Below are positions 52,980 through 55,900 of a stretch of 64,000 bases of DNA, in pieces; position 1 is the stretch's first letter; the number at the start of each line of letters is the position of its first letter. A program made the position numbers and the translations under genes. Source of the DNA: Bugula neritina (Eukaryota; Animalia; Bryozoa). The stretch covers positions 22,336,628-22,400,627 of the forward strand of contig OZ037767.1 of NCBI GenBank assembly GCA_964035545.1, read 5' to 3'. Below the pieces are notes generated by a model that was not told where the DNA came from, searched no databases, and worked only from the letters and a program-made list of their open reading frames with translations.

Positions 52980-55900
52980 TCAATCTAGTATAAAGTCACC
53001 ACAGACTGGAAAGTTAGAAGGAATCGTCTCCTCTGCACTTTCACCATCTATGTCAAATATCATACCCATACCTGTGTAAGATAAAAATGATTTGTTATAC
53101 AGCAACTGTAAATAACTTGCATCTGCCGCCACTTCTGCTACTACTTTTCGATTGATAACAATTAGCGGTAGCATCCTATGTAGTAATATTAGCATAGCAA
53201 CAGCATCAGTGTGTAGCAATATTAGCATAGCAATAGCATCAGGTTATAGTAATATTAGCATAGCAATATATAACATCAGTGTGTAATAATATTAGCATAG
53301 CAATAGCATCAGGTTATAGTAATATTAGCATAGCAATGGCATCAGGTTATAGTAATACTATAGCAAAGTAGTAACAGTAGTAGGCAGGAATGTCAGTTGA
53401 CAAATATTCTCTACAACATCTAACCTGATGCTTCACACATAACCCTACCCAGTCAGCTTTGTTCATTGAGTTTGTATAATTATACTAATCTTTTGTAGCT
53501 GTAATTTTTTGGTTAATATGGTTAATGCTATCTTTTTTTACTTTTAAAAAGTTTATTCGATAATAGAGTTTTACCATACCCATATACAAATGTGTGTCTT
53601 GGTGACGATGAGCCAACCAGTAACCAGGATTATCTGTGTATATCCTGACCACAGCATATCCACCAACTGGTATGAGAAGATTGTCTTTCAGGGGCGGGTA
53701 TTCCACATCAAAATGTCCTAGTTCTTCATTCACCCACTTGGCGTCATAACAGAGGTCATTTGAGCAAGTTATATCTGTCCCATCTATAGTTAGAAATAGC
53801 AAAACAATCTGACTCATGTAAGTTGTTTAATGTGTGATCATCAAACGCTGTGCATTTTCATCATCACTGAAAACTGCCTAATGCCATATAAAATCTAGCA
53901 TCATCAATTCCGAAACAGCTGCTGTAAACAGATTAATATATATATATATATATATATATATATATATATTAATATATATATATATATATATATATATATA
54001 TATATATATATATATATATATATATATATATACATATATACATACATACATATATATACATATACATATATATACATATATATATATATATATATATATA
54101 TATATATACATATATATATACATATATATATACATATACATATATATACATATATATATATATATATGTGTGTGTGTGTTTGTGTGTGTGCGCGTGCGCG
54201 TGTGTGCGTGCGTGCGTGCGTGCGTGCGTGCGTGCGTGCGTGCGTGCGTGCGTGCGTGTGTGTGTGTGTGTATATATATGACATATCGGAGACTAACTTA
54301 CTTGCAATGGCATCTGGCCCATTGACAGGGTAAAAGATCTTAAGCACAGCGAACCTGTATCCATGCATATGCCAGCTGTGGACGCAGTCTGTTGATTTGG
54401 AGTGCATGATAACCATCTGAATTATTCGCTGTTAAAAAACACTAAATTTAGTAAAATCATTTGAACTTTTTAATTTCTATAATAGTTTTTTTCAAGTGTA
54501 GCAGAAGAAACTAAGGTATGTATCTTTGATTTAAAAAACTACACAATATTAGTGAACTACTTTTACTGAAGTCTGGTTTTTGGTTTGTTGGCAGTTGATG
54601 TAACTAAATATAAATTCACTAAAAGAAAACATAAAAAGTTACAATGATAGTTATTATTGTTTTATTATTCCGTCTAAACTTTTTTTTGGGTTATATACTT
54701 TATTTTAAATTTGTTTTTGTGAGTATCAACTAGCCAAGGCTGCTTTCCAATTAGCAAAATTTTAATTTAATTTTCAGTAAGCCTATCATCGTAATTTTTA
54801 TTTATATTGTTTGGATTTGTGTAGAAACTTTTGAAAAAGTCAACATTGTTTATGATTTCATAAATGTTTTTTAAAACATACGTTTGCAATGCTTTGTCAA
54901 CGCACTAAAATAGATCAAATTTGAATGTTATAATCAATTTAAATGTTGCTAAACCTGCAAAATAGTTACCTACTCACAGCCAAAGCAATCCATAAAGCTT
55001 AACTCAAATTTTTGATGACTCCCGGCATCTACGATAGAAATTAATATTTTTCTTCAAATAATCAGTTTGATTTCCATGATTACCTTTGTTTGGAGCTTTT
55101 CAATATAGGTGCAGCGACACGAAAAGCGGTCGCAGAGTTGATTGTTGCAGGTGACGCCGGTCTTGGCAGATGGATCTTGGTACAGGTTGGTCTGAGGTAA
55201 TACCAGTGACCGGCCATTTATGGCATAGTACTTTGAGGAACTGAATGAGTAAAATCTTTCAATTATATCAGCATTTCCTCTGCAAAAGTTGCATAGAAAT
55301 ACAAGTTATGTGCAATTGTAACAGGCATTGAATGTAGACATAAATGAAATTAAATAACTGTTTGAACTAGTACATTATATAGTCTAACAGCAATGAAAAC
55401 TTACTACAGTTTATAGTAGTGATAACTATGAGCTAAACCTTTATAATGGACAGGTTTTTAGATGAGCTAAGAGTTTATTCAAATTTGACACAGTAGTAAA
55501 TGACTGGATGCTCTTCCTAACATCACCAATAGTGTTTACTGAAAATTGAACTTATATGACCTCGGGTTTACTAAGCCAACGCTCTAACCCTCTATAGACT
55601 ACGACACCAATGACATCTATTAATTCACCTTATTTTATCAATTTCTGCAAGGTGGTATCGCGTAGATCTCAAATTATGAATAGATATAGCTTCCCAATAT
55701 GGAGATGCAATGAATGGACCATTTAGTGATTTACACGGCAGAGCAGCAGTGCAGGTTATAGGAGAAGTAGTAGGGTCAGCAGTAGAGTTGGTGTAAGACA
55801 GAATAGAGTATCCGAATGTTGTTTTCACGAAATCAGGAGCTCTGTACCTCACCCAGTAGTTACCTGTTGAAAATTAGACTAATAACATCTTGGTAATTTG

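Follow-up and report, generated by a model that had tools for sequence, protein, structure and literature searches.

In multicopper oxidases (MCOs), the thiolate of the cysteine in the C-terminal HCH motif is a ligand of the type-1 (T1) copper, and Cys–His bridges pass electrons to the trinuclear cluster. In the assembled genome of the bryozoan Bugula neritina, one member of this family, MCO-5, encodes arginine in place of this cysteine. Cysteine and arginine at this codon, number 588, are separated by one T-to-C transition; the question raised by the locus is therefore whether the base is true and whether it is fixed, and considerations of chance are irrelevant to it. A preliminary description of the DNA had proposed either a T1-less 'pseudo-laccase', loosely analogous to the plant SKU5/SKS proteins, or else a null allele of recent origin or an error of sequencing. 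We examined the gene in the 64,000-nucleotide stretch of the assembly that contains it (contig OZ037767.1, positions 22,336,628 to 22,400,627; hereafter, the window), and compared it with its paralogs, its relatives in public contigs and the contigs assembled from public sequencing runs.

MCO-5 is an intact gene in a seven-gene array

The window contains five MCO genes, with HWHG motifs at position 4930 on the plus strand and at 15454, 25744, 48058 and 58028 on the minus strand, and C-terminal H-x-H motifs at 8490 (plus strand) and at 11272, 20562, 42129 and 53602 (minus strand). The first four of these C-terminal motifs read HCH, as the preliminary description had stated, and the fifth, that of MCO-5, reads HRH. 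Our models of the other four genes (g1–g4; Table 1), which together span 1721–50047, encode proteins of 625–633 amino acids without internal stops. Two further plus-strand MCO genes lie just upstream of the window (C3:22316700–22336699), bringing the array to seven. One of the upstream genes (up2) was modelled as an intact 626-amino-acid protein. For the other (up1), exon 1 was not found and the Pfam match to exon 10 holds two TAA stops; from its sequence, up1 may be a pseudogene. Within the array, MCO-5 has diverged most: it shares approximately 60% identity with its paralogs and sits on a long stem branch with good support.

Exon cores of MCO-5 were taken from tblastn comparisons with the paralogs, after which in-frame GT..AG junctions were enumerated. 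Searches were done exon by exon, and the joined coding sequence (CDS) was used for translation, alignment and dN/dS. The joined CDS has no internal stops, and 100% of its junctions are GT–AG. Pfam matches above the curated cut-offs, again exon by exon, occur in the order Cu-oxidase_3 (PF07732, exons 2 and 3), Cu-oxidase (PF00394, exons 5 and 6) and Cu-oxidase_2 (PF07731, exon 10), which is the order that defines a three-domain MCO. All ten copper-binding histidines are present: H125 and H127 in HWHG, H177 and H179 in WYHSH, H503, H506 and H508 in HSWHMHG, and H587, H589 and H593. The axial methionine, M598, is present as well, separated from the L4 motif (after HLYM-G) by an intron with its donor after 53580 and its acceptor before 53071, and the ten histidines and M598 align with those of the paralogs across motifs L1–L4. 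The N terminus is hydrophobic and resembles a signal peptide. By these sequence features, MCO-5 is a predicted secreted, three-domain, laccase-like MCO, and its family is clear. The 11-exon model also bears out the earlier statement that the T2/T3 and T1 histidines, the axial methionine, the open reading frame and the splice sites are intact; the placing of the methionine beyond an intron is the one detail that departs from the earlier picture.

Table 1 Features of the MCO array and of MCO-5 (window coordinates)
Feature	Position	Strand	Description
g1	~1700–8990	+	Intact paralogous MCO, HCH
g2	~10740–17540	−	Intact paralogous MCO, HCH
g3	~19970–30520	−	Intact paralogous MCO, HCH
g4	~41760–50050	−	Intact paralogous MCO, HCH
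MCO-5 gene	52980–59777	−	11 exons, CDS 1881 nt, 626 amino acids
MCO-5 exons 1–6	59777–59616, 58513–58352, 58087–57918, 57804–57593, 56747–56560, 56140–56008	−	
MCO-5 exons 7–11	55863–55629, 55279–55084, 54428–54302, 53783–53580, 53071–52980 (stop included)	−	
Exon 10	53580–53783	−	C-terminal Cu-oxidase_2 part, L4 motif, first base of Gly codon; PF07731 E = 3.7e-9
Exon 11	52980–53071	−	Remainder of Gly codon, axial M598, C terminus; product of junction 53580/53071 matches paralogs
Codon 588	53605–53607	−	CGT (Arg) at the type-1 copper Cys position; variant base 53607, plus-strand G (C3:22390234)
Codon 314	56093–56095	−	AGT (Ser); TGT (Cys) in five paralogs and the ortholog; second invariant cysteine altered in the assembled haplotype

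The introns of MCO-5 contain two microsatellites, (AT)n with (GTGC)n of approximately 335 bp (53936–54270) and (GTGTA)n of approximately 530 bp (58792–59319), and its last intron carries a 33-bp tandem repeat in five copies (53179–53357). Elsewhere in the genome, Cu-oxidase_2 matches were found in three genes at C5:7.14–7.18 Mb and in one at C3:17.83 Mb. Another match, at C13:35207–35560, falls in an intronless open frame of 619 amino acids on a small contig; this frame looks like a bacterial multicopper oxidase, from a symbiont or contaminant contig.

Paralogs and orthologs have cysteine at codon 588

The minus strand of the assembled MCO-5 reads CAT (53610–53608), CGT (53607–53605) and CAC (53604–53602), that is, H587-R588-H589, in agreement with the HRH motif first noticed at this site. 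By alignment, R588 corresponds to Cys507 of zucchini ascorbate oxidase (1AOZ; HCHIEPHLHM) and with the HCH cysteine of Melanocarpus laccase (1GW0), and this T1 cysteine is the one ligand out of 11 that differs in the assembled protein. At the position equivalent to 53607, the plus strand of all six paralogs has A, giving TGT. When the whole assembly was searched for another copy of exon 10, or for a haplotig of it that had been retained, only the seven array members were recovered, none of them above 83% identity.

A word search with exon 10 returned four short proteins. One of them (P0001), encoded by a JGI metagenome contig (L002), is 91% identical to exon 10, shows the same read-through into the intron and has TGT at the codon in question. 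L002 is collinear with window positions 52098–57344 at 82–85% nucleotide identity, and the MCO-5 locus is its sole close match in the whole genome to which the window belongs. Because of this collinearity and this single close match, we identify the gene on L002 as the MCO-5 ortholog, from another B. neritina lineage. A second protein from the search (P0004) corresponds to 'Mco1' in the Virginia draft genome of 2020. The contig that encodes it (L001) carries the orthologs of g1 and g2, and is collinear with window positions 1511–17971 at 84–87% identity. All three orthologous copies on L001 and L002, the MCO-5 ortholog included, have A at the equivalent of 53607 and encode TGT. Among the seven array genes and these three copies, G at this position is found in the assembled MCO-5 alone. 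Nine distant relatives, 52–71% identical, were recovered when metagenome contigs were scanned with exon 10; every one of them has HCH, and none belongs to this lineage. A word search with the C-terminal open reading frame piece (53488–53640, minus strand) for Logan-derived fragments of this lineage returned no candidates, and an exact look-up of the 110-amino-acid open reading frame with the arginine found no record, an outcome that carries no weight on the allele.

Across introns and intergenic sequence, the UK reference shows 81–87% identity to the Virginia 'S genotype' draft (PMC7576161) and to the JGI contig, with dS of 0.17–0.31. By this measure, their divergence is far above the expectation for one cryptic type. 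On the L001 contig, a proline/C-rich run at approximately 13550–13700, in exon 4 of the g2 ortholog, is interrupted by a frameshift, and one exon junction was not canonically modelled; both features probably reflect mistakes in the draft assembly rather than a broken gene.

The two lineages also share changes in other cysteines of MCO-5. In both, the protein lacks a cysteine pair kept by all other paralogs (VNCPF...GWxCI, replaced by LNGPF...YWEAI), and in both it has gained C239, C300 and C501 (residues 239, 300, 391, 401 and 501; exons 5–9). These losses and gains suggest a rewired, paralog-specific pattern of disulfides.

Read contigs fit a cysteine allele in the lineage of the window

Read evidence was drawn from Logan contigs, which drop one branch of a heterozygous site and can exceed unitigs in length, but are never shorter. 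Of the words sampled from window positions 52100–53870, 96% occur in a single run, X1, at a depth of approximately 105, and it is the sole public run with the locus. X1 contigs were examined over window positions 53360–53930. The one that includes the intron specific to MCO-5 measures 320 nt (53308–53627), with one mismatch and a depth of 105.1. A second contig of 293 nt (53665–53957) has no mismatch and a depth of 108.7, and a 77-nt contig (53603–53679) with one mismatch is compatible with an A allele at 53607.

We simulated a k = 31 de Bruijn graph from the seven array loci. With the assembled sequence, the graph predicts an MCO-5 unitig of 331 nt (53308–53638) without mismatch. When 53607 is changed to A, the prediction becomes a unitig of 320 nt (53308–53627) with one mismatch, exactly as observed; under the A allele the unitig ends at 53627 because the 31-mer at 53598–53628 becomes identical to g1. 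As contigs are never shorter than unitigs, the short end of the X1 contig does not come from the assembled sequence. Among 960 single substitutions tested across 53340–53659, G53607A alone gives a unitig end at 53627, and the observed start of the g1 contig at 53599 was reproduced only with A in the MCO-5 reads. From the length, ends and mismatch counts of the contigs, and not from a direct reading of the letter at 53607, we infer that X1 carries TGT in MCO-5.

It is conceivable, although distinctly unlikely, that the X1 contigs have been misread, with the mismatch lying elsewhere and the contig end arising from an unrelated heterozygous site, in which case the reads would leave the allele status of the lineage undecided. 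The differing letter is deduced and not read, and the observed contig ends at 53665 and 53957 deviate from the simulated ends at 53662 and 53961; these offsets of 3–4 bases imply that the X1 reads hold variants missing from the simulation. However, such a misreading would require the mismatch to lie elsewhere and, independently, a heterozygous site to fall exactly at 53628, as well as a third coincidence for the g1 start at 53599, whereas one substitution, the sole one among the 960, accounts for all three features.

Over 53560–53579 we found no second contig in X1, and the depth of this bin equals the 105.1 of the single contig, so that no G branch was retained. The contigs are compatible with a G allele in X1 as well, given that the coverage of the A path is inflated by sharing with paralogs and that a heterozygous branch is dropped. 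Should X1 represent the HiFi reads of the reference colony, that colony would be heterozygous; if X1 comes from another colony, G would be private to the reference or an error. Under both identities of X1, a cysteine allele would exist in the lineage of the window. The lack of a row for 53607 in the table of contig differences was considered as support for G and rejected: all rows in this table lie at least 31 letters from a contig end, and it also omits known near-end paralog differences, for example that of the g1 contig at 53607.

Three more runs (X2–X4), from another sample of the same study as X1, hold 5% of the sampled words of window positions 52100–53870, and their contigs cover the conserved core at 53598–53691 only. 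We rejected the possibility that these runs are RNA, as their contigs enter introns at equal depth and their depths are quantised at approximately 45 per locus. A 30-nt flank in these contigs is identical to L001 and has three mismatches to the window. This match identifies X2–X4 as DNA of an L001-like lineage, silent on expression and on the allele carried by the lineage of the window. The X1 and X2–X4 samples of this one study may belong to different cryptic lineages.

A haplotype variant is favoured over an assembly error

The B. neritina genome of the Darwin Tree of Life project comprises 216.00 Mb and was assembled from HiFi reads of colony tzBugNeri2 at a QV of 53.7, with Hi-C scaffolding from colony tzBugNeri1 and one haplotype deposited (PMC11480708). 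Alternatively, the G could have arisen as an error of assembly or consensus calling, or as a somatic or mosaic change in the colony that was sequenced; the germline would then have TGT, and the G no heritable counterpart, in keeping with the presence of A in all relatives and with X1 contigs that fit A at 53607 and retain no G contig. We consider this explanation unlikely. HiFi sequencing with hifiasm at QV 53.7 corresponds to approximately 4e-6 errors per base, and position 53607 lies in neither a homopolymer nor a repeat. Miscorrection from paralog reads would yield A and not G, every paralog having A. In addition, heterozygosity would likewise leave no G contig, since Logan contigs drop one allele. 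A real haplotype variant is likelier than a consensus error because this is a single-haplotype HiFi assembly of such quality.

MCO-5 evolves under purifying selection

The preliminary description had proposed dN/dS as a check on MCO-5. Across the 390 codons shared with the L002 ortholog, NG86 gives 0.12 for this ratio and YN00 gives 0.14; the corresponding values against orthologs are 0.10–0.13 for g1 and 0.03 for g2. These ratios place MCO-5 under purifying selection, like its paralogs. There are 29 amino-acid differences between MCO-5 and its L002 ortholog and, with five paralogs as outgroups, 6 of them fall on the branch of the window, 5 on that of the ortholog and 18 are unassignable. The derived changes on the window branch are F266W, C314S, L436S, P484Q, I574V and C588R. 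The absence of an excess of amino-acid change on this branch (6 versus 5) suggests that C588R is young, and nothing in the compared sequences points to a long release from constraint in the lineage of the window. We rejected an apparently faster evolution of MCO-5 in the tree, where its terminal branch measures 0.063 and that of the ortholog 0.014, as the ortholog lacks exons 1–4. The second cysteine change of the haplotype, C314S (Table 1), could mean that the assembled allele is older, decaying or functionally changed.

These data also bear on whether, in the UK lineage, Arg588 might be fixed or have reached a high frequency, with MCO-5 having recently become a T1-less copper-binding, structural or decoy protein there. 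That CGT sits in an otherwise intact gene would agree with this view, as would the change of a second invariant cysteine by C314S on the assembled haplotype, and the lineages are well diverged (dS of approximately 0.3), leaving time enough for a lineage-specific change. We nevertheless judge it very unlikely. The geometry of the X1 contigs is reproduced by the cysteine allele alone, the window branch shows no excess of changes, dN/dS against the ortholog is 0.12–0.14, and only 1 of 11 ligands differs in MCO-5, whereas in the known ligand-deficient homologs of MCOs many are missing (PMC4203857). The T1-less pseudo-laccase first proposed for this gene is thus disfavoured, by TGT in the ortholog, by the contig geometry from which TGT is deduced in X1 and by the paralog-like dN/dS. 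An extremely doubtful variant is that the haplotype with C588R and C314S, in an otherwise constrained gene, is a segregating T1-depleted laccase allele and no simple null, kept in the population because the protein acts without copper, or with the trinuclear cluster alone, perhaps in the cuticle or the adhesive matrix.

Discussion

Our results indicate that MCO-5 is probably an ordinary MCO that normally has the T1 cysteine, and that the CGT codon is probably unfixed, being likeliest a heterozygous or private missense allele present in the primary haplotype. In this explanation, a T-to-C transition at 53607 would have produced an Arg588 allele, which the HiFi assembly of the primary haplotype then captured. 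The Arg588 protein is predicted to lack the T1 (blue) copper and to be unable to oxidise substrates. T1-depleted MCO mutants made in the laboratory, such as Fet3p C484S, reportedly have no blue copper and do not oxidise substrates; by analogy, the Arg588 allele is a probable null. The putative null allele would be buffered by the second allele and by the six paralogs.

Of the two possibilities that the preliminary description had paired, a recent null allele or a sequencing error, the first is favoured in the form of an unfixed allele, and the second is made less likely by the QV of 53.7 and the non-repetitive site. TGT in reads, alleles or orthologs, which it had named as the sign of an error or a rare polymorphism, was found in the ortholog on L002 and, in the reads, is deduced from the contigs.

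For one laccase-like gene, the reference genome of B. neritina and any annotation derived from it probably represent an allele that is not the wild type and is probably inactive. In catalogues of bryozoan MCOs, HRH should therefore not be taken as the native state of MCO-5. The seven-gene array, which is under purifying selection, is a reasonable candidate for the cross-linking of cuticle or adhesive in this animal, a major fouling species. If the Arg588 allele truly segregates, it would provide a natural T1-depleted MCO open to assay, which is convenient and unsurprising.

Comparison with known multicopper oxidases

Ascorbate oxidase and laccase (1AOZ and 1GW0) have the same three domains as MCO-5 and share its motifs HWHG, WYHSH, HxxHxHG and HxHxxxHxxxxM; ascorbate oxidase and fungal laccases are also the best matches of MCO-5 exon 10 among solved structures. 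MCO-5 differs from these enzymes in a longer insert between HWHG and DG, in its lineage-specific set of cysteines and, in the assembled form, in having arginine for the T1 cysteine. A literature search for bryozoan laccases found no paper and no characterised bryozoan member.

Insect MCORP (PMC4203857) and the plant SKU5/SKS proteins resemble the assembled MCO-5 in combining the MCO fold with missing copper ligands. In MCORP and in SKU5/SKS, many ligands are gone and their loss is conserved across orthologs, whereas MCO-5 differs in one ligand and its ortholog keeps the cysteine. The alignments thus place MCO-5 outside the ligand-deficient MCOs of the MCORP and SKU5/SKS type, which are marked by several missing ligands and by conserved loss, and the analogy with SKU5/SKS drawn in the preliminary description does not hold.

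The closer likeness is to the T1-depleted mutants made in the laboratory, such as Fet3p C484S. Like the assembled MCO-5, these have lost the T1 thiolate and kept the histidines of the trinuclear cluster; the laboratory mutants carry serine at the T1 position, whereas the natural allele of MCO-5 carries the bulky, cationic arginine.
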